64,000 bases of DNA from Macrostomum hystrix (taxonomy: Eukaryota; Animalia; Platyhelminthes), in assembly GCA_950097015.1 (NCBI GenBank), contig CATNEN010000040.1, forward strand, positions 1 through 64,000. The letters run 5' to 3'. The notes under the pieces are model-generated. The model was given only the letters and a program-made list of their open reading frames with translations. It ran no database searches and was not told the DNA's origin. Shown here piece after piece: positions 21,901-61,958 of the stretch (positions are counted from its first letter, which is position 1; each line of letters begins with the position of its first letter). The position numbers were made by a program, and so were the translations under genes.

Positions 21901-22704
21901 GGCCAGCAGCCGCAGGCGGTGCAGGGCGGCGCCGCAGACCCGCCTGCTCGGATCGCCCAGCTTGTTAGCCAGGCTGGCCAGGGCCCGGCTGCGACAGTCT
22001 CGATGCCCGACGGCCAACTCGGCGACAGCGGCAACTGCGCGCAGCCTGGCCGCGTCAACCGGATCGCGCAGCAGGCCGTCCAGCCTGTCAAGGAACTGCT
22101 CCAGGAGGCGGGCCAAGCGCTCTTCGAAGCTCCAGAGAGCGCGAATATGGCGCGCCGCTTCGCGACCTTTGCGCGTCAGAATCGGCGCCAGTCGAGTGAA
22201 CGGGCGCCGATCTAGAGGGACCAGGCGCCTACCTGGCGGCAACAGGTGCTCCAGGAACAAAGACTTGACAGCTTCAAGAACAGTGAGAGCGTCGCGCTTG
22301 GCCTTCGGTGTCACCATGTCGATGAGAGACTCCAGGTGGGCCAGACTCGCCAGTGGGTGGTCGCGAACCAGGCCGATCATGACGCCCATCCGATCAGCCT
22401 GTGTGCCCGATTCCAGCACTCTGGCAGCGAATCGGTCAGCGAAGGTCTTCGAGGCCTGCATGTCCGCCCGGAAGGCTTTGGCCATCTGGGCCAGAGCTTC
22501 GGAACCTTTTTTGCGGGCGAAATCCGCCTTGCCAGACGGCTCGGAAGGTTCGCTTGGCTTCAACGAGGCCTTCGTGAGTGGATCTCGGTACCACTTGGGG
22601 GCGGCTGCGCCAGACGAGCCTTCCTCATCGTCCCGCTTGGCTGACGTTGAGGATGGCGCAACTCGCGCCTGCTTCGACTTGGAGTGATTGCCGTTTGGTA
22701 TCGT
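18924..22704 (-). CDS. CEBPZ: CCAAT/enhancer-binding protein zeta / Noc1-Mak21 (CBF domain) 60S biogenesis factor; exons 22704-21880, 21456-20905, 20502-20219, 19761-18924
   Basis: Recognisable motifs GTQADRM...LLPPGRRL..RPF, DEIERLLFR, SDRFYRALY, YDPLSRQPEFCGAE..LWEL..HPSVRLF and YDGDPLVDFSLSKFLERF, plus an acidic/basic tail. GT-AG junctions join in frame. No in-frame ATG before the 22704 acceptor. Confidence 0.93.
19920..20040 (+). mobile_element. SINE fragment in CEBPZ intron (family also at 39500-39600 and 50170-50290)
   Basis: Shared GCCTTCTCTCCGC.GCTGCGCCC.AAAT.AAT.T.GCCTCGCC.CGGAATCGAG on the minus strand, containing a B-box-like CTCGATTCC on plus. Confidence 0.6.
20590..20795 (+). 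repeat. 18/19-bp intronic minisatellite (CAGGTACAATCCYGRTYT)
   Basis: Direct reading. Confidence 0.9.
21610..21785 (-). mobile_element. tRNA/CORE-like SINE in CEBPZ intron
   Basis: The minus strand has an A-box-like TAGCATAGTGG, B-box GGTTCGATTCC and core TGTGACCTTTGGCAAGACAC. A similar copy lies at 39230-39400. Confidence 0.6.
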
Positions 22705-22784
22705 CTGCAAAGTTAAGTTTGAATTGTTTAATGCATGCACGGCTGACGCAACAGCAAGCTTAACAGGACTACCCGTTTTTGGTG

Positions 22785-23260
22785 GGGGTGGCAGAGCGGG
22801 CTGCAGACCCCATGCCTTCTATGGTGATGGTGGCAGAGCGGGCGGCAGACCCCATGCCTTCTATGGTGAGGGTGGCAGAGCGGGCGACAGACCCCATGCC
22901 TTCTATGGTGATGGTGGCAGACCCCATGCCTTCTATGGTGATGGTGGCAGAGCGGGCTGCAGACCCCATGCCTTCTATGGTGATGGTGGCAGAGCGGGCT
23001 GCAGACCCCATGCCTTCTATGGTGATGGTGGCAGAGCGGGTGGCAGACTCCATGCCTTCTATGGTGATGGTGGCAGAGCGGGTGGCAGACTCCATGCCTT
23101 CTATGGTGATGGTGGCAGAGCGGGTGGCAGACCCCATGCCTTCTATGGTGATGGTGGCAGAGCGGGTGGCAGACCCCATGCCTTCTATGGTGAGGGTGGC
23201 AGAGCGGATGGCAGACTCCATGCCTTCTATGGTGAGGGTGGCAGAGCGGGCGGCAGATCC
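22785..23260 (+). repeat. 42-bp minisatellite just upstream of the CEBPZ acceptor
   Basis: 14-aa periodicity in three overlapping ORFs. Confidence 0.93.
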
Positions 23261-24519
23261 CATAACATTATGATTCCGTGAGTGTAGAGCGGGCATTTCT
23301 ACTGTGCCTGTGAGTGCTAACAAAATAATTCAGTAAGAATGAATAAAGGAGAAGAGAACTGTTAAATATTGATATAAGGCAAACGAGCAGTTTATAATAG
23401 ACGATTGCTAATTATTGTAAATATTTGAAGGCTGATGATATAAAATAGTACACAACTAACATTTAGAATTGGTAGGTTAACAATAGTCACTAATAAATTG
23501 CGCAATAATAGTCATATTTATGCCAAACAGTAAAGGCAATAAACAACAAAGCTATTTATTTGATTATTGAGAAAACTTTTAGAAGAAAAATAGCAAAACA
23601 TATTTTTACTATTTTACTACTAATTTTTGCTTAATCGGAATGTGTGCGAAAATGATTCGATCTGATTAGCAGAATAAAAAGTAGCCGATCAAAAAAACTT
23701 TTAATCAGCAGACTGGCAGCAAGCCGTTAACAATATTCACACACTAGGCACTATTGGCAGTAATATAAGCACTTGCGTATAAATAGTGAACAGATGAATA
23801 AAACAATTTTAATTATCAGTATTCCAGCATGATAGCCGAGCTAAATCAGAAAAATGATGGCACCAATTTAAAAACAAGACCAAAAAGGACAAAACGACTT
23901 TCATTAAAATATCTGTCATGAAAAAAGTTAGAAAACACAAAAATGTAGAAAAAAATTTCTGCCGGAATATCCTAGGATTTTTGTTTCAATATCTTGGAAG
24001 ATCAAGGACAAAACTAGTAGATTTCTTAAGTTACAAAAAACAACAAAAAAATGAGACCAAAATCAACTAATGAGCATTAACTAGTGTTTTTATAAAAATG
24101 TAGACAAACAGAACTAAAAAACTGGCCATGGAATGTTGCTATGTACATACAATTACAGTGCTTTTACCACACTACTTATTAAAAAAAGCAGAATAAAGTA
24201 AAATTTCGCATTCATTGTGAATGTCTGATCGGAAGACAGAATATTTGATTGAAATTGGGCACAAATAGTGCATAAAAAACAGCAAAGCACATTTATCAGC
24301 TTTCCAGACGACATTTTCAATCGACATAGCGTGAAATCAGAAGACCATTAATTAAAAATAAAGTTCACATATTAACATTTATATTACACATTATTATTTG
24401 TCTCCAGAAGCCACTGAAATCGTGAGTGTCAGTTGTTACTAGAAAGCAGGCACTGCAGTTTATTCCTTTCATTCATGGGACAAATTAAAATAACAAATAA
24501 GTTAAGTCTATAAGTAAGC

Positions 24520-25370
24520 CCTATACAGTCTAGAACAGTAGACTGTACAGCCTGGAACAGTAGACCCTACAGCCTGGAACAGTAAACCCTACAGCTAATA
24601 CAGTAAACACTACAGCCTGGAACAGTAAACCAAACAGCCTGGAACAGTAAACCCTACATCCTTATACAGTAAACACTACAGCCTGGAACTGTAAACCCAA
24701 CAGCCTGGAACAGTAAACCCTTCAGCCTTATACAGTAAACACTAGTCTGGAACTGTAAACCCAACAGCCTGGAACAGTAAACCCTACATCCTTATACAGT
24801 AAACACTACAGCCTGGAACTGTAAACCCTACATCCTTATACAGTAAACACTACAGCCTGGAACTGTAAACCCAACAGCCTGGAACAGTAAACCCTTCAGC
24901 CTTATACAGTAAACACTAGTCTGGAACTGTAAACCCAACAGCCTGGAACAGTAAACCCTTCAGCCTTATACAGTAAACACTAGTCTGGAACTGTAAAACC
25001 TACAGCCTGGTACAGTAAACCCTTCAGCCTTATACAGTAAACACTAGTCTGGAACTGTAAACCCAACAGCCTGGAACAGTAAACCCTTTAGCCTTATACA
25101 GTAAACACTAGTCTGGAACTGTAAACCCAACAGCCTGGAACAGTAAACCCTTCAGCCTTATACAGTAAACACTAGTCTGGAACTGTAAAACCTACAGCCT
25201 GGTACAGTAAACCCAACAGCCTGGAACAGTAAACCCTTCAGCCTTATACAATAAACACTACAGCCTGGTACAGTAAAACCTACAGCCTAGTACAGTAAAA
25301 CCTACAGCCTAGTACAGTAAACCCAACAGTCTGGAACAGTAAGCCTACAGCCTGGTACAGTAAACCCAGT
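24520..25370 (+). repeat. ~22-bp minisatellite (CAGCCTGGAACAGTAAACCCTA) with ~64-bp higher-order unit
   Basis: Direct reading. Begins about 100 bp downstream of the claudin-like stop. Confidence 0.9.
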
Positions 25371-25474
25371 AAACAGTTCGAAACAGAAAGTTTTACAGCT
25401 TAACACAGCAGATCCTACAGTTAAAAACAGTAAACCGTCAGACAGGCTTTGCGGCTATTAGTCCGTGCAGCAGC

Positions 25475-26185
25475 TCAAATGACGGTATCCGCCCCAGACT
25501 GGCTGCGCGACACCAGCTTCTCAGTGACAGACTTGGCGTGCATTGGAAAGGCGTACTCATGGATCTGGGTGAGCTCCCTATCCAGCTTCATCTGCGGCAC
25601 CAGGAAGCAGCTGGTGAAGAAGCAGAACAGTGCGGCAATGATGGCCAGGCCGAAGCTCCAGGATGGCCAGTTGAGTGACGGCAGCGGCAGCCAGTAGGGA
25701 TCCAGACATTTGCCACCGAAGATGATGACACCGATGCCAATCAGGCTTCCAATGACCATGAACAGGTAGGCCAGACTGCGGCTGAGCAGCGCTCGCCTCT
25801 CCGCATTTTTGATGCAGCCCAGGACGTACAGAATGCAGAGAATGAAGCCGGCAATGAGCAGGAGCAGGCTGATGGTGATGAGAAACTGTACAAAGCGGAA
25901 CCAGGGCGGCATGAGGAAGTCGCGAATCGGGTAGAACTCGGGCGCGAATGCCCACCAGCAGCCAAAGTAGGAGCGCATGTCCGGGTCCAACCGGTGCACC
26001 AGGCCGTCTAGGCAGAATTCCCACAGGCCCAACCGGTCCACCGGGGTGTGCACCCGGGGCCAGGACTGCAGCCAGTAGGGTGTCACAAATGACAGGATGG
26101 TGCAGAGCAGGCTGATTAGTGAGCACACAAGGGCTGCTCGGGCGTAGCCGGAAACGCGGCGCTTTGTTTCGTACTCGGATGTCAT
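25475..26185 (-). CDS. Claudin/PMP22-family four-TM protein (invertebrate septate-junction claudin-like), single coding exon
   Basis: PYW...GLWEFC...C signature and four hydrophobic segments. ATG at 26185, acceptor TTTTACAG 20 nt upstream. Confidence 0.88.
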   Translation of the reverse strand: MTSEYETKRRVSGYARAALVCSLISLLCTILSFVTPYWLQSWPRVHTPVDRLGLWEFCLDGLVHRLDPDMRSYFGCWWAFAPEFYPIRDFLMPPWFRFVQFLITISLLLLIAGFILCILYVLGCIKNAERRALLSRSLAYLFMVIGSLIGIGVIIFGGKCLDPYWLPLPSLNWPSWSFGLAIIAALFCFFTSCFLVPQMKLDRELTQIHEYAFPMHAKSVTEKLVSRSQSGADTVI

Positions 26186-26614
26186 GGCTGGAATGTTATA
26201 GGGCACTGTAAAACTGGAGCAACTAAGATCAGCGGTTGGTGGAAAATAGTCCTAGCTTAAACACTATCTAAACTATAACAACTGAATTGAAATACCCTGT
26301 GGTCCTTCTACTATTAGTAGTAAGCAAAAGAAGAACGCTGTAAAATTCCACACAAAGTGTTTAAAAGTTTTTGTTTCAAAAAATGCATCATTCATTGCGT
26401 CAACGCGCAATGAGATGGGGCCGATCTCATTACTCATTCAGATAGCAATGAGTCGAAATGCATCTTTACTAAGCATGCTTGCAAAGGCTTTATATTTTGA
26501 AGGATTACATATCGGCTGACAAACAGTGCATCTGATGTGAGATAAGACATAGAAAATCAGCAGCCACAAGCAACAGTGGGCCAGTCAGCACCTCTCCGGC
26601 TCCATTAGCAGTGC

Positions 26615-28886
26615 TCACTTTCGCTTCCTTGCTTTTCCAACTTTTGCCGACAGCTTCGAGCTTTTTCTCGCCGTCGACTTGGCCTTCAATCCTTTGCCTT
26701 TGAGGATTCCGCTTCTGGCTTTGAAGGCGACCGGCTTCGCTTTTAGTCTTTTGTCTTTGATGATGCGGCTTTTCGACGTCGCCTTCGCCCGATCGCCATT
26801 GGCGAGGTCGAATTTCACCTTGGACGCCGAATTGACGGTAGACTTAGCCGTCGACATCTTCGACGATGACGATAGTCGAGCCTTCTTGTTTGGCGGAGCC
26901 GACTCGGCATCGTCGTTATCCGCTGGCGCCGCACCTTCGCCTTCTTTAGCTTCGGCTGCAAGCAGTCGGTCGGCCTCTTCAGCACTGAGCTGGCCGGCTG
27001 CCACCATGCCCTCCAGGCAGCGCCGCTTGTGCCGCAGCCGCTCCTCGGCCTTGGCGGTGATCCGATCGGCCTGGAAACACAGTGGTGCACTTAAGTTGAT
27101 CTACTTATTTAACATTCTTTAACAGCAAAAAAATTGATTCACCTGGACTGAGATTCGAACTCCAGACCTTTTTGTTAAGGAGACTGAAGCTTTAAACACT
27201 AGGCTATACAAAACAACTTTTTTTGTTTATCTGTTGTATTTAAATGAAGTGAGCAGTAAGCCAGGGCTTTAACTTTGATTGAAAGTACAAGTAGATAAAC
27301 TTGCAAGATGGAATCGCAAATTTGTGGGAAAACGATGTAAAAAAATATGGTGAAGCATATGGCACTTTATTCATAGAATGTCGCTCTTTACCTGTTCCGA
27401 CTTCCTCTTAGCCTTGAGTCGTTTCTTCCTCCTAGCCCGACTGTCCAACTCAACCAGTTCTTCCTGAGACTTGGACACAAATTTGTGATAGAGCACAGCG
27501 CCTGAATTGACGCCCTCCTCAACTTTCAGCAGCTGGAGCTCAATCCTGGGTCCTAGTTCGGTTAGGCGCACAGCGGAGGCGCCGCCTTGGGGATTGGAGG
27601 GCCCGATGGTCACGGGCAGGCTATCGATGGTATTGTGGTCGCCGTCCAAATCGGCGTCTGACAGACCGGAGTCTGAGGCGTTGCCGGCGCCGTTCATGAA
27701 ATCGTTGAAGTCTGCGTAGCGACTGAGGTCCGGAACCTGATATTTGATTTTAGGATCAGCTCACGCACAGTAGCAAACGTAGAGCAAACAAGACACACAT
27801 AGACACACACACACATGATTTACAATCAGTCACCCGACTTAATTAGTACTATTCTTTTCTAACAGTACTTCTGCCTCCAGTCAGTCAGTTGTTATCCCAG
27901 TCGGTCAGCTATAATTATAGTATTTCAGCTACAATTCTACAGTCTGTAAGCTACAATTCTACAGTCTGTAAGATACAATGCTACAGTCTGTAAGCTACAA
28001 TGCTACAGTCTGTAAGCTACAATTCTACAGTCTGTAAGCTATAATTCTACAGTCTGTAAGCTACAATTCTACAGTCTGTAAGCTACAATTCTACAGTCTG
28101 TAAGCTACAATTCTACAGTCTGTAAGCTACAATTCTAGAGTCTGTCAGCTACAATTCTACAGTCTGTCAGCTGTTTTAATATGTTTTAATATTATCAATC
28201 AGCGTTAATCCATCAGCCAGTTAGCAGCGAGCACAAACCTTCTTTCTCCTCAGCCGGCGCACAGCCTTGGACACGCCCCTGGGTGCCAGCCTGATGCTGT
28301 AGTGGCGCAGCTGAATTCGATCGCTCTCGGGCAAATAATTCAGCAGCAGGCAGCGGCGCACAGTTCGCAGGTTTAATTGCTGCAAATTTAACGCCGGTAG
28401 GAGGCTGCGAAAGGTGGCAGTGAGCAGCCGCAGCTGGTGACCTTCGCCAGTAAATCCGTTCATGATCAGCAGCGGCGGATTGTGATAAATAGACGAGCTG
28501 CTGTTAATCCGTCGGGCCGAGCTCAGAACGTCGGAGCGCAGACTGTAGGACAGCACTCGAAATGTCAGAGTGGGACCGTGCGGACAGGCCACAATGCGCA
28601 TATTGACAGAATCAGCCGGGTGAGTCAGGTAGATCAGATGGCTGACAGCGAATTTTCCAGCAATGGCGACGGCGTCCTTCAACACGTTGGACTTGCTGAA
28701 TCGCAGGCGCATGGCCGTGTAGGGCTCGAATGCCAGACGAAGATCGGTGGATAACTGTTTAACAAATTTGCCAACACCGGCGCGCGAGAATATCATAGTG
28801 TGCGGCTTAGCTCGCTCTTCCTCTTCTCGGCCCGGCTGGGCTTTGTTGCGCCGCTTGGCGCGGCCTTTCTTATTTTTGCGGGACAT
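26615..28886 (-). CDS. PPAN: Peter Pan / Ssf1 Brix-domain protein; exons 28886-28239, 27736-27392, 27070-26615
   Basis: PHTMIF, EPYTAMRL...N.LKD, GPTLTF, PPLLIMNGF, RRCLLLNY, LRHYSI, SAVRLTELGPRIELQLLKVEEG and VLYHKFV motifs. Junctions join in frame. Confidence 0.93.
27930..28170 (+). repeat. 22-bp intronic minisatellite (CTACAATTCTACAGTCTGTAAG)
   Basis: Direct reading. Confidence 0.92.
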
Positions 28887-31800
28887 TATATGGCTGCGGG
28901 AGGAACACAGATTTGGAAATTAAAACTAAGTAGTTAAATACGCTGCTAGTCATTTGCAGCTGTAGTTATCATATTTTAATAACAAAGATGAATGTTGCAA
29001 ACAATGGCAAATATGGTCCAATCGTCCAAGTCCAATTAAATCGAATACAAGTTAATTGGTCTGCAGCCAGCTGCTTAACTAAGTAGTTTGTACCACTGCT
29101 ACCTATATGGAATTACATTAGAGGGCATTGGCCAATGCTAGAATATCGACAGAAGCTAAAACAGCAAATAAGTACACAATATTTGCAACAAGCAACAACA
29201 ATTATAAATGACAACTAGACAATACAAAAAAGTATACAAACATGCTTTTTAGACCTGACCTAGATGTGTGAAACTAACCCAAATTAAAAGTGCACTTGTG
29301 TATAAATTCTACTGTGTGATTAGTAAAAACTTAACTTTTGTTCAGGGCACTACTACTTTCTGGATAACTCGACAACCTGCTGTCCCACATTGGATTCAGC
29401 TAGAGTAGAGTAGGCTTATAAACATTTATAGTTACCCTGAGCTCAGGTCAATATTATATTACAACTTTTAGCTAGTCTTGCTAAAAGTTACAATAATTAG
29501 CCTACTAAAGATTAGTGTCCTTTGATATCTCTGCTAGTAAATTTTTTTGTAGAGTTCCATTGTAGCCTTAGATATGGCAATGGGAAGTTACAGATACAGA
29601 ACTTTTTTCACAAAAGTTATAGGGATATGGTTATGGCAATTTGTGTGCATCTGGGGTTTTTTCCCAGATACAATGGTACTGAAGCCCATGAATATGTGTA
29701 TTGTGGGCTAGGGTTTCCCTTGTTGGGGCTGAAGATTGACAAGTTTAAACGAAATATTATTTTTTAATGCATTAATTTAAATTTGTCTAAAAAGGAAAAA
29801 TAATTTTTTTAAATGCCATGTGCATTTGTTGTGGGGTTTTATCCTAATCTGGTTAAGTCCCAGGAATTATATATTATAAACTTCAAACAAAACCATATGC
29901 ACATTGTGCCCTGTGGGATAGGGTTTTTCCTAGTTGGGGAGGCAATTGATAGACAACTGAATTATAATAAAGTCACTTATTTAGACAGAATACAATGATA
30001 AAATGGAAACTGTAAATTCCCTGGTATGGTGTTATGGACTCCAGATCTGGATATAATGTCAGTTTTAATCTTCAGGCCTACATATGTTACATTTCTGTGT
30101 TACATGCATAATACATTGGTATTTAAGTAAATAAAATTTTCAAAATTGTCTTATTTTCCACTAAATCTACCTACTCACAGTTGTGAGACTAGTATAGGCT
30201 TAGCAATAAAAGAAAGCTTATGAACATCACTAATTGTGAATTGCTAATTGAATATTGCTAAGCTGGAACTGTGTCAATGAGTTCTTTTTTATAGTATAGT
30301 ATGCCTAAGTTTAAAGGACACAATTGTAACGATTTGCAGAGGAAAGTGCGGAACTAGTTAACATGCTTTCATCGAGTTTCTGAAACCTTTTTTTGTTCAG
30401 TAACAAGTCAGTAGTGTCATTTGCGCATGTTCATCATATCATATTTCAAGCATGTATGCAATACAATAGTCAGCGCAATTTTTCATGCAATTGTTAGCAA
30501 CATTACATATTATTCAAAATTAATGATTGTTCAAAATTTAACGTACACGTGCATTGCTCGTAATTAAAAGAGGGCCTACTACAGGTACTGGAGGTTCTGG
30601 AAAACATGTATATGGCCAGTTGTATATAGCACATGAAAATTGCTAGGATACAGTTCCTGTAAAATATGTGCTTTAAGTTCTTAAAGTTATCGGCAAAACA
30701 AGCTGCCATGTAGATAGGCAGAGAATTATCGGCACGGATCTGTGTGGATAAAATTGAAATTAACAACATAGCATACATAAAGAGTTGTAGACCTATTCAT
30801 ACAAGCTGCCATGTGGATAAGTAGAAAATTATCGACATGGATCCGTGTGGATAAAATTGAAATTATTGGCACTGGACTGTGGGAATAAGCACTGCCAGAT
30901 ATTTTTCTATTTCAGCAATCATGGCTTGCATCAAGGAGGCAAAATTGATTAACCATGCTTATTCATTTCAGTAGACAAACTGAATGGAATAGCCAACCCC
31001 CATTGCATGACAATCCATTAACAAGAAAAATAGAATTTTGCAACTTCAAGCCAAATGGTCGTCTAGCTAAGTCAATTTTGTGTCCAACATGGAGTAGTGC
31101 AATGAAACTAACACCTGCACACAACAATATAGACTACCTAACTAGCGTATAACTAACTAGACACTATGCCCCTCAGCTGTGGTTCACAATCATTTACATA
31201 TATTTCAGCTATTTAAATGATCCTAAACCAAAGTTTTTAGAAAAGTTTTTAGATCCTCTTTTTAGAGAAGTTTTGGAACTTGAATGATGCACTAAAACAC
31301 TATTACATTTGGGTCATGATCATTTATATATATTTCTGCCAAATGATAATGAATAAAAGTTCATTAGGCCTATTAAAAGTTAAAAGTTTTAAAGTTAATT
31401 AAAATTTAACTAAAAGTTAATGAAAAATGACTTATTAAAGTTATCAAAGTGGTTTGTTTCCGAAATGGTTAGTGGACCAAATTGATTCAAGAGACATGTC
31501 ATACATGAAGCATGAAGCTAGATCAATGGGAGGTTAAGGAAATCAGGAAGTTAAGCTAGGTTAGTTAATCTTGCTTTGGATACAGATAGGCCTAGGCTAA
31601 TGAAAAGTTTTTAAAATACCGATTATACATAAATATACAGAAAAGTAAAAATATTTGGTTATGATAGAAAAATATTTTTGGTAGTTAACCAGAAAGCAAG
31701 AAACACAATACAATACACAGGGCCTATTGAAAAAATAATTTGCTAGGTATTTAAACTCGTTAGGTCTTATAAATAAGCAAGTATGAAGCAATAAGTTTTA

Positions 31801-32009
31801 CATATGAGTAGGCCCTAGAGAATTGTCTCTACTCTCTAGATAGGCCTATCTATCAGAATCTCATGTAGTACCGCCAGGCGCCAGTATGTTAGAAAACATC
31901 TAGCACTTATTAAATAGTGTAATAAAGTAAGCACCATTAGCACTGACATATCAGCTTTGTCATGTCTGTCGGAAAATGTCTGTCAGAGAATCTCTTAGAC
32001 TAAAAAATA

Positions 32010-33540: not shown

Positions 33541-34459
33541 GTGTATCTGTTAGAGAGAAACCATATAAGCTAGTTTATAAGCCTTATAAACCTTATACAG
33601 ATGGCAACTTTGGGAAGTGTTCTAGGCATGCTTAGTGGTCTGGCCCACAGCCTATTTTTTTTATTTTTATGCTTTATCAGTATCAGTAGTAAGTAACAGA
33701 ATTGACTACTATGTAATCTAGTTTAATTAAGTGGAAAGTAAAAACCAATGGCAATGGCAATTTCCACCTTGTAGCTAGCTAGGTCATATTCAGGGCTACA
33801 ATATGGTGTAATGAAACATGTTTTATTCTTGGCAAATGAAAAAATTAATCTGAGGCAGTTACTATAGCCACTTTTAGTGCATACTCATACTATCTTGTTA
33901 TATTAGTTATGTCAGTGCAAAGGGACTATTTAATGCTGTTATATATTGTACTCTTGTCTGTTACTTTTTAGTTTCTGGGTACATGTAAGTTATACTAACT
34001 GTATTGTAACTATACTCATCTAATATAGGTTGCAGTATAGCTATACCTTTAATAGGTAGTATCCTCCAGTAATTTATAGTACATATTATTAGATAGGCCT
34101 ATACTTTTCACCATAGTCTGTTTTGGTGAATCATGTTACAAGCATATTTGTCCAGCAAATCTCATCAAGATAGCTATCTGCCTGTTTCAGGTTGTAAATC
34201 TACATACTAAATAATAAAATAAGTTTTTTCTTGTCATTATCTCCTACCAATATATGTTTATTGTAGCATTCCATAATTATGAGCTTATTTATAATGAGAT
34301 AAGTACTCATATATAGAATCAAGATTACTGTATAAAAAGAGTCGCTCTAGATGACCCAGACGACATGCTAAGGATTCCAAAATCAAGTAAATCATGTAAA
34401 GCAAAATGAACAATTAAGCTTAGCTTAGAGATTGATTGCTTCCAATCTGCAATCTCCAG

Positions 34460-35774
34460 GCCCCCGGATTCCTAGAGCAGTGCGAGAAGCACTTTGGCAC
34501 CAAGGACCTCTATGCGGTGATTGGCTGCGACTCCAGTGCTACGCCAGCCCAGCTAAAGAAGGCCTATTATAAGAAGTCTCTGGAGCTGCATCCGGATACA
34601 AATCGGTCGGACGAGAAGGTGGAAGCCACCGCCAAATTCCAGGTACTTTCAAAGGCCTACTCTCTGCTTGGCGACGTAGAGAAACGCAAAATCTATGATG
34701 AAACTGGCAGCGTTGACGACGACTCGGGCGTTGAACTAGCCGAAGAGTTTCAACGCTGGGAGGATTACTGGCGCCTCCTGTTTCCCAGGGTCACCACGCA
34801 GCGCTACAATGAGTTCAAGGCTAGCTATGTTGGCAGCGAGAAGGAAGTGGCCGATATTAAGAAGGTAAATCAGCTTTCACTGGAAATATTTAGATGCATG
34901 GCATTTGTTATTAAAATACGAGTACATCATGTAATCTAACTAATTCCTCATTACTAATATTTGGCATATTTGCATATTCTTTAAATTCAAACTTTTAGTG
35001 CCAAAATATTCTAAGAAAATTCCGTTAATATGTAAATTATAAAGAACTTTATTATTTGATAAAAAAATTATGCACACAAATTAATTTAAACACCTTTTTT
35101 TCTTGCTATCCAATGCTTTTTTAGTTTTATGTTTCTTAGAAAACTGACAATAAGCGAAAGAATCTTTGACAGGCAATAATGGCTTGTTTTTTAGGGCGTC
35201 ATGATGTACATACCATGTGTTAAAGTGTAGTCACCAATTGTATAAGTGTTTTCCTAAATTGCCTTGTGTCCATTCGAACACTCAGGCCTACCTGGAATTC
35301 AACGGCGACATGGACAAGGTGCTGGAGTCGGTGCTGTTCGCTGACTATCCGGAAGAGGACCGAATCAGCGGTATAATCAGCGGCCTGATCGACTCCGGCG
35401 AGCTGCCCGCACTTGATGCCTTCACTGCCGAGCCGGCCAAGAAGAAGGCCAGCCGCAAGCGGGCCTACGAGCGGGAGCGTCGGGAATTTGAGAAGGCCAA
35501 TGCCGAAGAGAAGAAACGCAGCGGGAAAGGCGTCGCCGGCTTGGAGGACGACGGCGAGAACAATCTGGCTCAGGCCATTCAGCTGAACATGCGGCAGCGA
35601 GCCGGGGCCATGGAGTCGCTGATTGACAGCCTGGCTGCCAAGTACGGCGCAGCTGGCAAAGCAAAAGCCAGAACAGCCGGTGTGGCCAACGGTGGCGTCA
35701 AGAAGCGGCCGAAGGCAAAGATTGGCGCTGCTTCTGCGGCTTCTAGTAGCGGCAAGCGCGCTAAAAAGTCTTGA
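34460..35774 (+). CDS. DNAJC9: DnaJ homolog subfamily C member 9; exons 34460-34864, 35286-35774
   Basis: J domain with HPD (LELHPD), DLYAVIG, FQVLSKAY, YDETG, W.DYWRLLF, YVGSEKE, AYLEFNGDMDKVLESV and KYG tail. No in-frame ATG (TGA at 34433). Confidence 0.93.
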
Positions 35775-36283
35775 CAAGAAACACTGCTGTGTTTTTATAC
35801 CTGTTTAATAGCCAGTGAGTGTCTATTTATCCCTCATTTTAGTGGCTAAACTCCATATTAAGTGCATAAAAATATTCAGCATTTTATAACAATTTCAAAA
35901 CTATAAGCTCACTAATGCTTCACTACTTTCCTATTTGCTAGAAAAAATCTGCGCTGGCAACATTTGACTTGCAAACTATTTTCTTTACTAATAGGAGTAT
36001 AAAATCTGCATTTTCTATTTTGCTAAAGCAACACTTCGACAAAAATATGAAATATTTCATTCTTTTTTCAGTGGTATTATTATTTAATATTCAATCCGAA
36101 TATACGAGTATTACTTCCTGTCATACAAAAATATAACCGGTTAAAACTGTGCGTAAGTGGCAAGAAGTCTTAACTTTAATAGCTTAATCTTACTAATGTC
36201 TAGATATAATAGCGAGTAAATAAGAAGGGTTCCTGCGCGATCTGTGCACATACTATTATTAGCTCAAGGCATATGATCTAGAG

Positions 36284-36766
36284 CAGGGGTCGGCAAACTC
36301 CGGCCCGCGGGCCAGATGCGGCCCTCGAAGCTCCCAAATCCGGCCCTTTGCCCCTTCTGACATCTACAGTGTCCTGTTTCATCTCTCTCGTGTCTAATCT
36401 CTCCCGTGTCTAATCTCTCCCGTGTCTAATCTCTCTCGTGTCTAATCTCTCCCGTGTCTAATCTCTCCTGTGTCTAATCTCTCCCGTATCTAATCTCTCC
36501 CGTATCTAATCTCTCCCGTGTCTAATCTCTTCCCTGTCTAATCTCTCCTGTGTCTAATCTCTCCCGTGTCTAATCTCTCCCGTGTCTAATCTCTTCCCTG
36601 TCTTATCTCTCCCGTGTCTCATCTCTCTCGTGTCCCATCTTTCCTGTGTCTCATCTCTCACGTGTCTCATCTCTCCCCTATCTCATACTTATACAGTCAA
36701 TGCGGCCCGCTGTCGTCTTTTGGGCTCTCTCTTTGGCCCGCCAGCGCATAAGTTTGCCTACCCCTG
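36284..36766. mobile_element. hAT (Charlie/Buster-like) MITE, 483 bp, with internal 16-bp repeat
   Basis: TIRs CAGGGGTCGGCAAAC / GTTTGCCTACCCCTG. Perfect 8-bp TSD ATCTAGAG (36276-36283 and 36767-36774). Subterminal GGCCC motifs. Confidence 0.93.
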
Positions 36767-37083
36767 ATCTAGAGCTCAGAGTTAAGCCACTCTAATACTG
36801 TGGGCATACATCGGGAGTTGGCACCAGCATTAGCTGTGATAATTAAGGGTGGGTGCGGCGTTCCCCCAGTCCATGGACTGAAAAGCCGTAGGGAGCCTTC
36901 AGAGACACCGCGCAATAGCTGCGGCTGTGCTGCTGGCTAGACACGTGGCAGATTAGAGGGGGATAGATAGGACATTGGGACAAGACAGGAGAGATAAAAC
37001 CGGTGGGAATGGGCCAGGATTTAGGAGCCTTGTCGATCGTGATTACCCTCTCTTGAAGTCTAGAATATTTTCAATTCTTGCAG

Positions 37084-40000
37084 GAGTCCAAATTGCCCGC
37101 AAGCGTCCCTAGTGGCAGCCAGCGCAGTCAGCCGCATCAGCGAAGCCAGGCCGACTCCGTCAGCAACTGGCGCCGGCCAGCCGTTCCAGCAGGCGCTGCG
37201 CCGACTGGCGGCGGCGCCGCTTTCAACGACAAGTGGCGAAGCGGTGGTAGAAGGCCGCCTCGCGGAGGGGGCGAAGGTGGCAGCAGGTACGCTCGTATTT
37301 AATCTGCACTTTTAAGGTTAAACCACGATTAACAATTAGCTTCTAAAAATGCGCTTTGGAAGGCCACTGAACATTCTGCTTGATATCTAAGCTGAAATTT
37401 CGTATGATGATCTATACATCATGTCTACATGTACCAGCGTATATACATGTATAGACATCTCAATCTATGCGTTTTGTACAGTTTTTGCGAATATATTCAC
37501 CATGCATACGTACTCGTACTGTAGTTTAAATCTGCGTACGTAGGAAAGTGCAGTCTGCGTGCATAGGAAAGTACAGCCTGCGTGCATAGGAATGTACAGC
37601 CTGCGTACATTGGAATGTACAGCCTGCGTACATTGGAATGTACAGCCTGCGTACATTGGAATGTACAGCCTGCGTACATTGGAAAGTACAGCCTGCGTGC
37701 ATAGTAATGTACAGCCTGCGTACATTGGAATGTACAGCCTGCGTACATTGGAATGTAGATCCTGAACTTTCTATTTACTTCGGAATGTGCATGTCTTGTA
37801 TCTTAAATTCGATGCCAAGGATAACTCTCGACTCACGACCCGCTGCTTCTTCCACCTTGCAGGCGTTCTGGAGCACAGTCAGCAATCGGCGACTCGTCTG
37901 GCTTTTCAGCAACGTCTTCGTCAGCGTCAACTGCCGCGGCCAGCTTAGACACATACGATCTGCAACGCCTAGATCCGTGCGTGCAGAAGCTGCTGCTGCT
38001 GCTGACCTCGCCGCCAGATCCAGAGAGAGCTCCCGCTACCGTGCGCAGCCTGTGGCGTGCCAACTGCGCCCAGGCGTTGGCCGAATTGCGCTCGGCCGCC
38101 GAGCTGGGGCCGGACAACGAAGTTGGCCAACGCGTGGTCAGCCCGGACGCTTTGGCCATCCTGATGCAGCTTCTGCCGCGCTTTCAGCCGGGCGACGAAG
38201 CGCCAGTGGCGCCTCTACAGGTGAATATCGAGTTAACATGCTTTATGTAATTTTAGCCACTCGATGAATATTATAACCGCAGGTAGAATGCTTTCATTAG
38301 AATCGCACCCAGAAGCTTAATGCTAAAATCGCAGCTAGATGGCTTAATACTGGAATCGCAGCTAGATGGCTTAATACTGGAATCGCAGCTAGATGGCTTA
38401 ATACTGGAATCGCAGCTAGATGGCTTAATACTGGAATCGCAGCTAGATGACTTAATGCTGGAATCGCAGCTAGATGGCTTAATACTGGAATCGCAGCTAG
38501 ATGGCTTAATACTGGAATCGCAGCTAGATGGCTTAATACTGGAATCGCAGCTAGAAGGCTTAATACTGGAATCGCAGCTAGATGGCTCAATTCTGGGCTA
38601 AATACTGGAATCGCAGCTGGGTGCCAGAATCAACCTGCTCTCCAAAATGAATCAATCAATCGATCACTCAGGCCCTGATCGCCAGCGCTCTGATCAGCCA
38701 CAAGATCACGCCGGCTGAGCCGCTCACCCTGGCCACCGTTCGCCACCTGCTGGCCCGCCTGTACAGTGACCCCATGAGCTCCGAGAACAATCATTCGGAG
38801 CTGACATGTGCTCACCTGCAGCTGCTGGCCGCACTGTGCCTGCCAGTCAGTCATTTCAGCCAGCAGCAGGGCCTTCTGCGTGACACGGTGCGCAGATTGC
38901 TGGAACGACTGGACCGCTGGCCTGATGAGTCGACAGCCGAAGATCAGCTGGCGTCTTCCTGCCAGTTCTATGCTGCTCAGGCGTTGGCCAATCTGGCCTA
39001 TTTAAAGCCTACTGATCAGCGCGACTGCCTGCCCCCGGATTTGGTATCTGTTCTGATGGCGCGCTGTTTGTCAATGTTGGAATCTGCGCCAACTGAAACA
39101 GGCGGAAATAGCGCCAGAGTGCTGCAACTGCTGCTGCATCTGCTAACCTTTCTAATCAGCAGGTAGAAACATTAATATCAATATTGTTATTATTACTGAT
39201 TACACCTCTGAAAGCTGCGTACGGACTGTTCAGTCCATGGACTTGGGGACCGCAGCACTCACCCTCAATTTTCCCAGCCAATGTCGGTAAAATGTGGATT
39301 TTAATGTCTTGCTAAAGGACACAAATTGTTCCACGGGAGTCGGGAATCGAACCCTCAACGTTCAAGTCATTAGTCCGACCTCTAGACTACAACCCCCTGG
39401 CTATAATTAATGTAACCGTGGGCAATGACGCAGCATTCTGTTACATTCGACCAGCAAGCAATTTTCATGTATCTTTGGGATCGACTTGATTGCGCCACAA
39501 GTTCCCAAATAAATGTGGCCTCGCTGCGGATTCGAGCTCAGGAACCTTTGTTCCGAGTGTGAGACGCGTACGTTGCCGCTGCGCTGCTCAACCAGTGACA
39601 TTATCCAGTGCTATTATTTCCCTATCGGCCAGGTCGCCTCCGATTCGCCCTGCCGACCTGCCCCGCCTGCTGACCCAGCTGCGTCGCTACTTGTGGCACG
39701 GCCTGCCTCCGTCGACCGGCTCCGCCTCTGAACCCGACGCGCAGATTGTCTTCGCCCGAGAACCGGAGCTGGACCAGCTCGATTCGGTCACTGTGCCCGG
39801 CCTGCGATCAAAGAAGCCCCTGAAGAAGGCTCGCTACGTTGCCAGGGGCGACGGCGGCGACTCGGACGAAGAGGCCGGCGGCAGCTTGGAGCAGCGGCTC
39901 AGCGGCTTAGACCTGCGGGATGCCGACCTGGCCGACCTAATGATCAGCCGGGACGGTGAGTGCAGCCTTCTTGCTTCAAAATTTAATCTGAATCTTGGGG

Positions 40001-45862: not shown

Positions 45863-45889
45863 GGGAGAGAGTGAACTCTTTAGGCTGGG

Positions 45890-47160
45890 TCTCCCCAGAT
45901 CCTCAGGCTGAACTTTGGCACTTCCCAGAATCTCAGACTGAATCGGCACTCCCCCAGATCCTCAGGCTAGAGTCTGCCACTCCCCCAGATCCTCAGGCTG
46001 ACTCTGGCACTCCCCCAGATCCTCAAGCTGACTCTGCCACTCCCCCCAGATCCTCAGGCTGACTCTGGCACTCCCCCAGATCCTCAGGCTGACTCTGGCA
46101 CTCCCCCAGATCCTCAGGCTGACTCTGGCCCTTCCCCAGATCCTCAGGCTGACTCTGCCACTCCCCCAGATCCTCAGGCTGACTCTGGCACTCCCCCAGA
46201 TCCTCAGGCTGACTCTGGCCCTTCCCCAGATCCTCAGGCTGACTCTGCCACTCCCCCAGATCCTCAGGCTGACTCTGCCACTCCCCCAGATCCTCAGGCT
46301 GACTCTGCCACTCCCCCAGATCCTCAGGCTGACTCTGCCACTCCCCCAGATCCTCAGGCTGACTCTGGCCCTTCCCCAGATCCTCAGGCTGACTCTGGCA
46401 CTCCCCCAGATCCTCAGGCTGACTCTGGCCCTTCCCCAGATCCTCAGGCTGACTCTGCCACTCCCCCAGATCCTCAAGCTGACTCTGCCACTCCCCCAGA
46501 TCCTCAGGCTGACTCTGGCACTCCCCCAGATCCTCAGGCTGACTCTGGCACTCCCCCAGATCCTCAGGCTGACTCTGGCCCTTCCCCAGATCCTCAGGCT
46601 GACTCTGGCACTCCCCCAGATCCTCAGGCTGACTCTGGCACTCCCCCAGATCCTCAGGCTGACTCTGGCACTCCCCCAGATCCTCAGGCTGACTCTGGCA
46701 CTCCCCCAGATCCTCAGGCTGACTCTGGCACTCCCCCAGATCCTCAGGCTGACTCTGGCCCTTCCCCAGATCCTCAGGCTGACTCTGCCACTCCCCCAGA
46801 TCCTCAGGCTGACTCTGGCACTCCCCCAGATCCTCAGGCTGACTCTGCCACTCCCCCAGATCCTCAGGCTGACTCTGGCCCTTCCCCAGATCCTCAGGCT
46901 GACTCTGCCACTCCCCCAGATCCTCAGGCTGACTCTGCCCTCCCCCAGATCCTCAGGCTGGAGTCTGGCACTCCCCCAGATCCTCAGGCTGGAGTCTGGC
47001 ACTCCCCCAGATCCTCAGGCTGGAGTCTGGCACTCCCCCAGATCCTCAGGCTGGAGTCTGGCACTCCCCCAGATCCTCAGGCTGGAGTCTGGCACTCCCC
47101 CAGATCCTCAGGCTGGAGTCTGGCACTCCCCCAGATCCTCAGGCTGGAGTCTGGCACTCG
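45890..47160 (+). repeat. 30-bp minisatellite immediately after the HEATR6 stop
   Basis: CCCCAGATCCTCAGGCTGACTCTGGCACTC units. Confidence 0.95.
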
Positions 47161-52600: not shown

Positions 52601-52921
52601 GCCGGCCTCGGTCCAGGCCAAGGCCACGCCGACTCCGCCGGCACCGCCGCTCAACCGGTTCGAACCGGTGCCGCCGAAAGCCAGAGCCCAGCCGAAGACA
52701 AAGTAGGCTAGGACCGCTGCGCAATGTCCAAGCAGGCCCTTGGCGATTGCATTCACGGTCGATCTCGAAGGTCCAATGCCGGCTTCAGCGAAAGCAAATC
52801 CGCTCACACCAAAATGTACTATCGTGGCTAGCGTCACTGCGAAGAAGGCGTCAAACGAGGCGTTGGCGTTGGCGACTGCGAGCTGCAATGTGGCCGCTGG
52901 ACCGGCTAGTGCGTCTAGCAT
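49599..52921 (-). CDS. Ammonium transporter (Amt/MEP family), divergent; exons 52921-52480, 51642-50704, 49939-49874, 49774-49599
   Basis: AATAAAVVGGASAER, GFIQPIAAHWAW, DFAGSGVVHLTGG, GHSTPL, DDPLGVVSVHLGAGAWG and GIDRARHGEVAYP motifs. Junction phases are consistent. Confidence 0.9.
52095..52420 (+). repeat. 21-bp minisatellite, Amt intron 1 (CAGTCATAGCTGTCACTCATC)
   Basis: Direct reading. Confidence 0.93.
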
Positions 52922-54564
52922 TCCTATAAAAATCCGATCGAGCTACAGTTCAAGATTAGGTTTCCTGCAGAACTTCTTTTTAAGTGTACAAAGTCTCCCA
53001 ATGCGGTGAAGCTACTATAAATATATCTATCTAAATTTGTCACTTAGTTTCCCTAAAAAATCTGCATTATTAAGGGAAGGTTTCATGAATGAGTAAGAGA
53101 ATGAGATTGATTATTTTCTGGAACACAGTTCACCATTCGAATCTTGATTGAAATCTTTCGATTTTGGAAATCGATAATAACTATCTTTATAGTTCATACC
53201 AATACGAGCTAGCCAGTCCCTATGTGCATGTACAGAAATCTTCCCAATTATTCGCGACAGAAATTAAGTCAGTTCGATAGTATATTTCACTGGATCTTTA
53301 TATTAAAGGCTAAGAGAAAATATATACCACCATGCAAATATGCAAACTATGCATTTTTTCAGAAGTTTTATGACGTAGCCTACTAAGATGTAAAATAATC
53401 TATAGTATTCGGCGATGAACAAGTACAAGTTAGTTAATCCTACCTTATGTTGTCGCTGTACCCGGGCTGTTTTGCCTTTATTGGCAGGAATAAGTGCAGT
53501 GCTGACTAATTCAGTGAGTGATTGTCAAATCACATAACTTGGCTTTTCAGAATAAAGCACTAATTCGTTTCTTTATGTCAATCCAGTGTTTGTTTGTCAG
53601 GGATTCTGGAAAAAATAATGCTAGCCTAAAGATCAATACATGTGTAGCCGACTCTGGGTTCCTAAATTAGCTGTGTAAAACCAACAAATAATTTGATTTG
53701 CAACAAAAAATAAGAAAACGTAACTAGGTGTATTATATTTGTGAATTGCTACATATACAAGAATAAGCAACAAATATATTTGTTATAAATGGTGCTAAGT
53801 TTTCCAGAAAAACTATAGGAAATGCCAAGGACAAACTAAGAAGGACGGGACTGACTGCTTATAAGTTTTTATTGGAAGCGGATCCAATGGTGTTTTTTAA
53901 GTATTTCGCAAAACATGTGCTTTAAAGAATTTTAGAAAGCTTCATCCATAAATAATTTGTCTTCATTTTATTTTCGTTTATTTATCATAAAACACAATTA
54001 CTATCTCATGACTAGCTCAATTTCACAGTAACTTTCTAATTAAGTATGTGTAGGCCTATTACAAGAATTGTTTAGAATTTTTTCATTAAAAAATCAGTAG
54101 GTCAAGCTAAAGATAAGCTAATTTTATGTCGGATTGGTTGCTCTTGTTATTCACAATAAATTAGCGAAAATAAAAAAAACGTTTAATTGCATGTTATTAT
54201 TCATCTAGTGGTCCTTGGTGCCACATGGAAGGTGGACATTTGATCCAGTTCAATTAATTAACCAAATGGGGAGATAAGACAGTACGTGATAAGAGATAAG
54301 AAATGGTAGATATTAGATAGAGGACAGAGATGAAACAGCAGAAAGGGGAGAGAAGACACAAGAGATATGAGACTGGGTAGACCCTAGCAATAGGTTTTAA
54401 TTTGGATAGCATTTACTACCCAAGTTATTGACTTGTTACCGTCAGTCATTAATCATTTGGCCAAAGTTGGTACCAAACTGGATTATATTCATAACTAGGC
54501 CTATGTATTAACCCTTATAAATAGCATGGTTGTACACAGTATGGCTGTATGTAGTATGTTCATA

Positions 54565-54846
54565 CCATACATGCGCAACCTCCCAAATCTTATCCGGCCA
54601 TGCGACTTAGTTTTTGCTCTCATTTGCGACTTAGTTCATTTCATTGCTCTATTTATGACTTAGTTTGCTCTCATTTGCTCTCTTTTTCTCTCCCCTTTTT
54701 CCTTTTCTTCACGCCTTCCTTTTTTGTCCCTTGGTCCCCCCTTTGATTTTTTGCGCTTGGTCTATTGGTTTTTGCGACTTACCTTGCTTGGCCCTCGTTT
54801 CACCCGGCCGGTTCGGCTGGGTCGGCCGGGTGTTGCGCATGTATGG
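54565..54846. mobile_element. 282-bp MITE of unclear superfamily
   Basis: Perfect 15-bp TIR CCATACATGCGCAAC, flanked by TTCATA on both sides. Internal TGCGACTTA repeats. Confidence 0.8.
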
Positions 54847-58740: not shown

Positions 58741-58741
58741 G

Positions 58742-59444
58742 TGTGGCCCAGTTTGAAGAAGGGGCAGGTATGGGAGATAGAAAATGAGTCTAGCTTCAAG
58801 GAGGGAGGGCTCCGGGGCGAGCGACAGCGGCAGCGAACGACGGCGAGAAACAGCGGATCGACAACAATCGATATCAGCAAGCGTTTACAGCAAAGGGCGC
58901 GCCAACTCTATGCGAAGCGCAGGTCTCAGTCTGGCATCGAGTGACGATAAGAAAAAAAACTCAAGTGGCCGAGCCTGGGGCCTGTCAAGATTAAAAACTG
59001 CTGACGCGGAGGAGACGGCGCAGACGAAAGCAGACGACAAGGCAGCGGAGGGCGGGAGCGAATCAAGCGAATGATAGCGGCTACATTAATACATGCGTTT
59101 GAAGAAGGGGCAGGTATGGGAGATAGAAAATGAGTCTAGCTTCAAGGAGGGAGGGCTCCGGGGCGAGCGACAGCGGCAGCGAACGACGGCGAGAAACAGC
59201 GGATCGACAACAATCGATATCAGCAAGCGTTTACAGCAAAGGGCGCGCCAACTCTATGCGAAGCGCAGGTCTCAGTCTGGCATCGAGTGACGATAAGAAA
59301 AAAACTCAAGTGGCCGAGCCTGGGGCCTGTCAAGATTAAAAACTGCTGACGCGGAGGAGACGGCGCAGACGAAAGCAGACGACAAGGCAGCGGAGGGCGG
59401 GAGCGAATCAAGCGAATGATAGCGGCTACATTAATACATGCGTT
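58742..59444 (+). repeat. Candidate LTR (58742-59085, TGTGGCC...GGCTACA) plus near-complete tandem duplicate (period ~346 bp)
   Basis: Direct repeat 58751-59096 / 59097-59441. TG...CA inverted termini and an ATTAAA signal. No matching 5' LTR found. Confidence 0.55.
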
Positions 59445-60278
59445 ACCGTAATGTGATACTAGTATTAACAATGAACTAACTATTATAAATTAGAGACGAG
59501 AAATCTTGTCCTGAACACAATTGCTTTGATAAAAAAACTGCTGACATGATTCCATTATAAATATATTGAGCCTAGAAAGGTTTTCTGTATCCCCTGGCAG
59601 CTCGAAGCGAGATCCGAAGTATAAACTGAGAAGACTACAACTCGACTACTATTTGTTCGGAGCGACCAAGTCTTGATAGTCTGGGCAGACGCTTTTGACT
59701 AAAACTTATTATTGTAATCCAACAAAGAAGAGAAGAACCAAGAAACCCCATATATGTCCTGTAAAATTTCTTTCTTCTAGTGATTTATGAATAGGCACCA
59801 AAATTTTTCTTTATTTTAAAATTAGTTTTTTATACCTAGGTTCGCAATCTGTTTCAGGTACTATTCATAAGCTTGGCTAGCTGAAAGCAACTGCTTTATC
59901 TATTAAATGGCTTTGAACTGGTACCTCAGAAGAAAAGTGAGGGCTGTTGTAGTTTTTTAGAATTAACTTAGATACATTGGCAAATGTGAAACTCCGAAAG
60001 CTTTAGTTTAGTAAGTTTATGACTTCTTTATTGTTTATGATCTAGATACATTTTTTTTGTTCTATTCCCATGTTCTCTTGTTATAGAAATCGCCTATATT
60101 GTATGTGGCCAAATTAAAAATGTAGTCTTATAGTCTTCTAAGGTAATAAATTAATCACTAATATCTATTGCCAAATTAGTTTCATGCCTGTGCGAAACTT
60201 TTTGTAATTTTATTAGCCAATTTGTTTTTTATATGACTACTGTCTATACACTAATAAGTAGTCAGCAAAGCAAATTCA

Positions 60279-60437
60279 AATCCCCTTAGCAATAAAGTTA
60301 AGCTTAATAAAAATACGTGTATAATTGTCCCCATATTTGGCATCTTTTGGTGAAGAAATTGTGAAAATCGGTTAAGCCGTCCGGTAGAAAATAAATTACA
60401 AGCAAGCAAGCAAGATTTACACTTTTATTATATAAGA
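60279..60437 (-). mobile_element. 5' fragment of the same Helitron family
   Basis: Minus strand reads A|TCTTATATAATAAAAG, (GCTT)n, AACCGATTTTCAC...CACCAAAAGATGCCAAATATGGGGACAATTATACACG, matching 6693-6870. Confidence 0.85.
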
Positions 60438-60524
60438 TTTATTATATGACTATTGTCTATGCACTAATAAGTAGTCAGCAAACCAAATTCATGTTACCAC
60501 ATCCTACAAATATTTACTCTTCAG

Positions 60525-61958
60525 GCTGGCCTAGACGAAAACAGCTACGAAAAGGCGGAGAGCATTGCTCGCTACCTACTACAGCTGACTAAGCAACGAC
60601 CCGACCTAGCTGTGGTCCTGGGATCTGGACTCGGCGGCCTTGGCGACTCCCTCACTGACAAACTGGTGCTGCCCTACACCAGCATTCCCGGCTTCCCGAC
60701 CAGCACCGTAGCCGGTCACCATGGCAACCTGATTTTCGGCAAAGCCGGCGAGCGCTCCGTGGTGCTGATGCAGGGCAGGTTTCATGCCTACGAGGGCTAC
60801 TCTGTGCACCAGGTAATGATCGTTCCGCTGAACCTTTCTCAGTGGCCCCGAGGCATTCCATCATGGCTCTAAACTACTTCGCCCTCAAACCAGGTGACGC
60901 TGCCTATGCGAGTGTTCCGCCTAATGGGCGTGCGAGCCGTGCTGCTAACCAACGCCGCTGGCGGCCTCAACCGCGACTACGCCGTCGGCGATGTGATGCT
61001 GCTGCGCGACCACCTCAACCTGCCCGGCCTGGTTGGCTGCAATCCGTTGCGCGGTCCTAACGACGACCGGTTCGGGCCGAGATTCCCGGCCACTTCGGAT
61101 GTGTACGATAAGCGCCTGCGAGACCAGCTGAGCCAGGCCTTTGAGAGCTGCAGCTTTCCGGGGGCCACTAGGCTGGGCGTGTACGCCTATCAGCAGGGTC
61201 CGTGCTACGAATCCGTGACCGAGTGCCGCATGCTCATCACCATGGGAGCCGATGCTGTTGGTGAGAATAACTGACTGATTGCAGCAGCTAAAGTGGAATG
61301 ACTAAGATACTTCAAACTGTGTACATCAAGTCAAAACACAAGGCGAGAGAAGTCACAAATCACAAATAGAGTTACACTTAGGACATGAGTAGTGTCAGGA
61401 AAGACAAGAATAATGACAGGAAGGACAAGAATAATGACAGGAAGGACAAGAGTATTGACAGGAAGGACAAGAATAATGGCAGGAAGGACAAGAATAATGA
61501 CAGGAAGGACAAGAATAATGACAGGAAGGACAAGAATAATGACAGGAAGGACAAGAATAATGACAGGAAGGACAAGAATAATGACAGGAAGGACAAGAGA
61601 GGTGACATTAAACTACTATCAGAGTTGCGTGAAGTGTCAGGCAGGACGCGAAGAAAGATCCAAAATCTAGGAGTAGTGGAAAGATTGAAACTCACTAAGT
61701 GGTGACAGAACGGCAGCAAAGGCGTCCCTGACCCCAACATCTCGTCTGGCAGGCATGTCCACTGTGCCCGAGGCCATTGTGGCGCACCACGCCGGCATGA
61801 GAGTAGTGGCCTTCTCCTTGGTAACAAACATGGCCCTGCTAGACTGGGACTCAACTGAGAAGGCCAACCACGCCGAGGTGCTGCAGACCGGGCAGCTCAG
61901 AGCCGATCAGCTAAAGAGCAGTGTTGCTCATTTTATGAACAATTTGAGTCTAGACTGA
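60525..61958 (+). CDS. PNP: Purine nucleoside phosphorylase; exons 60525-60812, 60894-61260, 61753-61958
   Basis: GSGLGG, IPGFP.STVAGHHG.L, MQGRFHAYEG, TNAAGGLN, GPCYES, GADAVGMSTVPE, SLVTN and NHAEVL motifs. No in-frame ATG upstream of the acceptor. Confidence 0.95.
61385..61600 (+). repeat. 21-bp minisatellite, PNP intron 2
   Basis: GACAGGAAGGACAAGAATAAT units. Confidence 0.92.

Follow-up and report, generated by a model that had tools for sequence, protein, structure and literature searches.

A 64-kb stretch of the genome of Macrostomum hystrix (positions 1 to 64,000 of contig CATNEN010000040.1), referred to below as the window, raises the question of how translation begins in genes whose first coding exon opens at a splice acceptor and has no start codon of its own. 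Four genes are concerned: a CEBPZ/Mak21-like gene (CEBPZ below), DNAJC9, a HEATR6-like gene (HEATR6 below) and a gene for purine nucleoside phosphorylase (PNP). The answer proposed here is that in these four genes translation begins at the terminal AUG of the spliced leader (SL), once the leader has been joined to the exon by trans-splicing, and we assign this reading a probability of about 0.85. It covers four of the approximately seven genes in the window. An initial annotation, made from the sequence alone, had treated the idea as fairly new; however, the SL AUG as an initiator is a described flatworm mechanism (PMC9851317, PMC3510090), the principle of which has been known since 2006, and what is new here is the four gene examples and, for DNAJC9 and HEATR6, the conservation of the arrangement between two Macrostomum species.

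The four acceptors were checked in the window, at 22704 on the minus strand (CEBPZ) and at 34460 (DNAJC9), 37084 (HEATR6) and 60525 (PNP) on the plus strand. The bases at the junction, marked here by a slash, are TTGCAG/ACG, CTCCAG/GCC, TTGCAG/GAG and CTTCAG/GCT, respectively, and each AG is preceded by a pyrimidine-rich stretch. All four exons begin in codon phase 0, and the frame stays open from the acceptor for 281 (CEBPZ), 159 (DNAJC9), 72 (HEATR6) and 115 (PNP) codons. In the upstream direction, a stop closes this frame after 38, 8, 9 and 18 codons, respectively, with no ATG in between. The claim of the initial annotation that these genes start at a phase-0 AG and have no in-frame ATG upstream was therefore confirmed in its coordinates, its frames and its upstream stops. 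The first in-frame Met is found at codon 74 in CEBPZ, 147 in DNAJC9 and 82 in PNP, while HEATR6 has none in exon 1 and reaches its first at codon 168 of the spliced mRNA; in all four genes these residues lie inside or beyond conserved parts of the protein, CEBPZ being the weakest case. The G+C content rises from 31–47% in the 150 nt upstream of the acceptor to 54–69% in the DNAJC9, HEATR6 and PNP exons, and these exons therefore truly begin there; the CEBPZ exon has no such step. The chance that four of four ATG-less first exons fall in phase 0 was estimated from textbook phase frequencies as approximately 0.04, which is mildly improbable, and the weight for initiation at the SL AUG lies with the N-terminal alignments and the RNA rather than with the phase count.

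A leader that ends in a start codon is present in this species. The SL published for M. lignano has ATG as its last three letters (PMC8629364), and the last 29 bases of this SL occur in at least 27 exact copies in the M. hystrix genome, many of them in arrays with a period of 11.6 kb; the same 29 nt written backwards, used as a control, gave no match in the genome. One SL RNA gene copy was read and contains TTGCATG/GTAAG followed by the Sm-like AUAUUUUUAG, so that the AUG at the end of the SL exon abuts the GU donor. This copy is identical to the 45-nt M. cliftonense SL (PMC10468722 supplement), and its single ATG is formed by its last three bases. A scan of the window with Rfam returned no match, and the SL RNA genes sit on other contigs. 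The general premise of the initial annotation, that flatworm SLs end in AUG, thus extends to this genome, and its proviso that the organism might possess no such leader falls away.

In the proposed mechanism, the outron of each pre-mRNA would be removed at the acceptor named above and the 45-nt Macrostomum SL put in its place. Because each exon begins in phase 0, the terminal AUG of the SL would become codon 1, and the predicted N-termini are M-APGFLEQ... for DNAJC9, M-ESKLPAS... for HEATR6, M-AGLDENS... for PNP and M-TIPNGNH... for CEBPZ. The entire 5' untranslated region (UTR) would consist of the 42 SL bases before the AUG. A transcript that is not trans-spliced would have an in-frame stop and no usable AUG, so that the protein would depend on trans-splicing.

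The most serious competitor is ordinary cis-splicing, in which the same acceptors would be joined to a short 5' exon upstream that supplies a terminal ATG, or to additional coding exons; RNA bears directly on this. RNA-derived Logan contigs from four runs were aligned to positions 33600–39400 of the window, which include the acceptors of DNAJC9 and HEATR6. Three of the runs (X5, X6 and X7) belong to one study and the fourth (X1) to another. The contigs skip 34865–35285, 37287–37862 and 38221–38671, all with GT..AG ends, and therefore derive from spliced RNA; they differ from the window at zero to one position over 400–2000 nt. At DNAJC9, the contigs of X5, X6, X7 and X1 match the window from 34459 and carry 24, 24, 24 and 22 additional 5' letters, respectively, that match nothing in the window, and at HEATR6 those of X5 and X7 begin to match at 37083, after 22 letters of this kind. 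The match thus begins one base 5' of the exon at both genes, as would be the case if the leader ended in G, like ...AUG. In the contigs of the four runs, neither the acceptor at 34460 nor that at 37084 was joined to upstream window sequence, the 860 nt upstream of 34459 were crossed by none of the contigs, and depth over 33600–34375 was zero in all four runs; the joint across the DNAJC9 intron at 34865–35285 was present in three of them. An assembly with k = 31 would be expected to keep some 23–25 letters of a leader common to several thousand mRNAs, which matches the tails in both genes and in all runs, and a gene-specific first exon would presumably not give tails cut so uniformly. At 34460 and 37084, two of the exact positions where the initial annotation had expected RNA to reveal a joined SL, a nongenomic tail of 22–24 nt was found; and the cis-spliced upstream exons that it had named as the finding that would overturn its proposal were not seen in the DNAJC9 and HEATR6 contigs of these runs.

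The comparison with M. lignano leads to the same junctions. The locus is syntenic in that species, with a Brix gene on the minus strand followed by DNAJC9 and then HEATR6, and is present in three copies. Conservation begins at residue 1 of both the DNAJC9 and the HEATR6 protein; exon 1 is 87% identical in DNAJC9 and 59% identical in HEATR6, the latter with in-frame indels only, and the similarity of the DNA falls off directly 5' of the acceptor. The seven DNAJC9 models of M. lignano are all 5'-partial and lack a Met; four begin with APGF and one with FQ-APGF. This last model, which is based on the ML2 assembly, implies an acceptor TTTCAG/GCG. Among the HEATR6 copies, two of the three read ATTGCAG/GAG, the acceptor found in the window, and the third reads ATTCATG/GAG, with the 67 bases before the junction letters identical to those of the other copies. 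All three DNAJC9 copies read ATG/GCG.

In the M. lignano assembly (GCA_002269645.1), the junctions of the two genes (L006:9985–10000 and 13960–13970, with the same genes in L007 and L008) show in part ATG, or CATG or TGCATG, where CAG is expected, and they are the sole place where the letters of the SL itself were seen at the DNAJC9 and HEATR6 junctions. It was considered whether these ATGs are real genomic start codons, with CATG/G in place of CAG/G. This was rejected, because CAG is retained in two of the three HEATR6 copies, whose flanks are otherwise identical, because the ML2-based model reads FQ/APGF, and because the Mlig_3_7 assembly was polished with Pilon using STAR-mapped RNA-seq (PMC5730564). 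On the most economical reading, polishing replaced the last three to six outron bases with SL letters from reads that carried the leader, an artefact that mimics genomic start codons. The letters would then be the footprint of SL–exon junction reads at exactly the orthologous codon, which again argues against a cis-spliced exon. As judged from the aligned sequences, the acceptors of DNAJC9 and of HEATR6 each fall at the same codon in both Macrostomum species.

At PNP and CEBPZ, which lie beyond the RNA-covered stretch, cis-splicing has more room, and homology is the guide. The exon at 60525 and two later exons encode a PNP with 50–60% identity to known PNPs. Exon 1 (60525..60812, plus strand, 96 codons) opens in phase 0 at CTTCAG/GCT and holds the phosphate-loop motif GSGLGG. 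In the alignment with human PNP, residue 7 of the translated query falls on residue 6, and the addition of one Met would make the protein exceed the human enzyme by two residues. The fit to the orthologue N-terminus proposed in the initial annotation thus holds by alignment, which speaks against an upstream coding exon. A protein word search with PNP returned only short PNP fragments of other organisms; proteins of ~290 amino acids were beyond its reach, the longest stop-free reference being 133 amino acids, and the result says nothing on absence. From its sequence, PNP very probably initiates at the SL AUG. A second, diverged PNP gene, with 42% identity, was found elsewhere in the genome (L010; G000:C29:8526485–8526739, minus strand); its genomic ATG follows a CCCACAG acceptor by six bases, and an SL AUG spliced to that acceptor would likewise be in frame and would add two residues.

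The first coding exon of the CEBPZ/Mak21-like gene (21880..22704, minus strand, 275 codons) opens in phase 0 at TTGCAG/ACG and ends in AAG/GTAAGC. Its residues 64–275 align to residues 246–446 of yeast Mak21, and the CBF/Mak21 domain is located in the next exon. The N-termini of CEBPZ/Mak21 proteins are long and variable elsewhere, which would leave room for an additional exon. On the other hand, a 42-bp tandem array (11.8 copies, window 22780–23263) occupies the sequence directly upstream of the acceptor. A word search with CEBPZ exon 1 gave no match, which says nothing on the absence of a Macrostomum orthologue. On sequence grounds, CEBPZ probably initiates at the SL AUG, less securely than the other three genes. 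Taking the four genes together, we regard cis-splicing as improbable.

A second alternative accepts the junctions and has ribosomes begin further downstream, at an AUG or at a non-AUG codon, everything between the acceptor and that codon being 5' UTR. It finds some footing in CEBPZ, which has an in-frame Met at codon 74 and where the first 63 residues align to nothing, and in HEATR6, whose exon 1 is of low complexity. In CEBPZ, the frame is open from the acceptor and Met74 already lies inside the Mak21-aligned stretch. In DNAJC9, exon 1 (34460..34864, plus strand) comprises 135 codons and encodes the J domain; it has the RNA-supported leader junction and opens in phase 0 at the acceptor given above. 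Exon 2 and the stop codon lie at 35286..35774 on the plus strand, the intervening GT..AG intron being the one whose joint was seen in RNA. The spliced frame has 297 residues, or 298 with the SL Met. The DnaJ domain occupies residues 16–80 of the exon, the start of the J domain being at residue 14–16, and the first in-frame Met comes only beyond this domain, so that a start there would delete it. Similarly, the first in-frame Met of PNP lies after the GSGLGG loop and a start there would remove the loop.

The HEAT-repeat gene at 37084 has a syntenic counterpart in M. lignano that contains the HEATR6 domain, DUF4042. Its exon 1 (37084..37286, plus strand) comprises 67 codons and 2 nt and has an RNA-supported leader junction at its phase-0 acceptor; exons 2 and 3 (37863–38220 and 38672 to at least 39164, plus strand) continue the same frame through GT..AG joints seen in the RNA contigs. 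Frame 0, that of the acceptor, is the only one that stays open across the three exons. In-frame conservation of the protein extends to residue 1, with a Leu in M. lignano in place of its first Met, which is difficult to reconcile with a start at that codon. Moreover, the SL AUG would be the first AUG on the trans-spliced mRNA, and in frame. A downstream start is therefore very unlikely. The weakest explanation, that the missing ATGs are assembly errors or that the genes are decaying pseudogenes, has nothing specific in its favor beyond the M. lignano case, where polishing could change junction bases, and is scarcely credible given correctly spliced RNA contigs that are nearly identical to the window, frames that are intact and conserved, and the same acceptor in a second species.

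Initiation at the SL AUG is extremely likely for DNAJC9, and hardly less so for HEATR6. A search with the DNAJC9 protein returned only M. lignano proteins, with 75% identity over the C-terminal part, and the M. lignano orthologues carry both DnaJ and PF23302 HTH_DNAJC9.

Several points nevertheless weigh against initiation at the SL AUG in all four genes. The tails at 34460 and 37084 are putatively the SL, as judged from their length and uniformity, and this leaves cis-splicing some ground even at DNAJC9 and HEATR6. Trans-splicing of PNP and CEBPZ is likely from sequence and homology, the RNA support being confined to DNAJC9 and HEATR6. The evidence covers the SL gene, the acceptors, the frames and, for two genes, RNA junctions, and ribosomes would be expected to initiate at the SL AUG. 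The base at position -3 of this AUG is U, and some leaky scanning past it is therefore likely; in CEBPZ, the base at +4 is A, a weaker start context. Finally, in yeast Mak21 the aligned part is preceded by 245 residues, and since orthologue N-termini are long and variable, an upstream coding exon for CEBPZ is conceivable. The core proposal of the initial annotation, that the SL supplies the AUG, consequently stands at two levels: it is supported at DNAJC9 and HEATR6 by the AUG-ending SL, by the leader at both acceptors and by M. lignano junctions that carry SL letters or the same acceptor, and at PNP and CEBPZ by the exon sequence and by homology.

Comparable systems have been described. All reported flatworm SLs end in AUG (PMC12582326). 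In Schistosoma mansoni, Cheng, Cohen, Ndegwa and Davis (2006; J Biol Chem 281:733), as summarized in PMC9851317, found the SL AUG in frame in 28% of trans-spliced complementary DNAs (cDNAs) and required by more than 40. The likeness to the present genes is an AUG-ending SL joined in frame to an exon without its own AUG. The two cases differ in that S. mansoni belongs to another flatworm order, Macrostomum being a free-living member of the Macrostomorpha, and in that other genes are involved; here, initiation is predicted from sequence and RNA. According to that summary only 28% of the S. mansoni junctions are in frame. In Echinococcus granulosus, taking the SL ATG as the start makes 143 of 187 SL clusters full length, and some need this ATG for a conserved N-terminus (PMC3510090); that work is a cestode expressed-sequence-tag survey, whereas the present analysis uses genomic acceptors and a comparison of two species. 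In nematodes, Oikopleura and trypanosomes, an SL start codon creates or extends open reading frames (ORFs), termed slORFs (slORFfinder; PMC9851317). However, slORFs mostly use a near-cognate NUG inside the SL, whereas here a true AUG stands at its very end. In Macrostomum itself, 20–39% of genes have been reported to be trans-spliced, and the terminal ATG of the SL, which has the same sequence as here, has been called a translation start codon (PMC8629364, PMC5730564, PMC10468722). In the literature searched, no count or list of SL-AUG-dependent genes was found for Macrostomum.

It is tempting to regard SL-AUG dependence as a common, stably inherited state of conserved trans-spliced Macrostomum genes rather than an occasional accident, a generalization that we hold tentatively and at less than even odds. 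If it is true, phase-0 acceptors should be found in strong excess at SL sites, and the same 5' UTR would be common to a large class of genes, which would have no translational control specific to the gene. Gene finders that require an ATG will truncate such genes, mark them as partial or start them at the wrong codon; the 5'-partial DNAJC9 models of M. lignano may be compared. Genes with no 5' UTR of their own, which cannot be expressed without trans-splicing, also bear on transgene design in Macrostomum and on the purpose of SL trans-splicing.

In the other three genes considered, all on the minus strand, an acceptor lies close to a genomic ATG. In the claudin-like gene (26185..26189), an AG stands 2 nt before the ATG (26185), and a putative SL AUG would read AUG CCA UGA, overlapping the ATG; the short ORF ending on the ATG that had been predicted for this gene is what the sequence would give. 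An exact look-up of the product of this single-exon gene in the protein collection gave no match; that collection appears not to include the contigs of the RNA runs. In the Brix/PPAN-like gene (28884..28895), a CGCAG acceptor stands 7 nt before the ATG (28886), and a putative SL AUG would open an out-of-frame ORF of eight codons. In the ammonium transporter gene (52919..52944), AGs stand 2 and 21 nt before the ATG (52921). The spacings of 2, 7 and 20 nt given in the initial annotation therefore hold for the claudin-like and Brix/PPAN-like genes, and the third should be 21 nt (and 2 nt). An SL AUG at the 21-nt acceptor would be in frame and give an eight-residue extension, MLDRIFIG-MLDALAG..., with no upstream ORF. 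A layer of translational control through out-of-frame upstream ORFs in these three genes is a matter of speculation.

In M. lignano, the Brix/PPAN-like gene (L006:2478–2492, minus strand) reads TTTTCAG/CCTCATTTGCATG/GCT, in which TTGC, the last letters of the SL before its own ATG, precedes the ATG. This may be chance or the same overwriting as at DNAJC9 and HEATR6; in the latter case, initiation of the M. lignano gene would require the SL AUG, whereas that of the window species has its own ATG. Two tandem arrays lie nearby in the window, one with units of 22 and 64 bp (39 copies, 24513–25367) below the claudin gene and one with a 22-bp unit (11 copies, 27927–28172) below the first Brix exon.

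The spacer between DNAJC9 and HEATR6 contains a 16-bp satellite with the unit ATCTCTCCCGTGTCTA, present in ~18.6 copies at 36381–36677 within window positions 36270–36775 and flanked on each side by inverted TGATCTAGAGC...GGCCC. The summed contig depth of the RNA runs at this satellite is ~100 000, with more than 1000 contigs at 90–95% likeness, which points to an abundant dispersed repeat family. On the 3' side of the HEATR6-like gene, an open frame of 346 codons (window 45965–47002, minus strand) matches β-solenoid and adhesin-head families of chiefly bacterial distribution (DUF2807, 4.7e-13; YdcK solenoid repeat; LEA_2) and probably encodes a repetitive protein.

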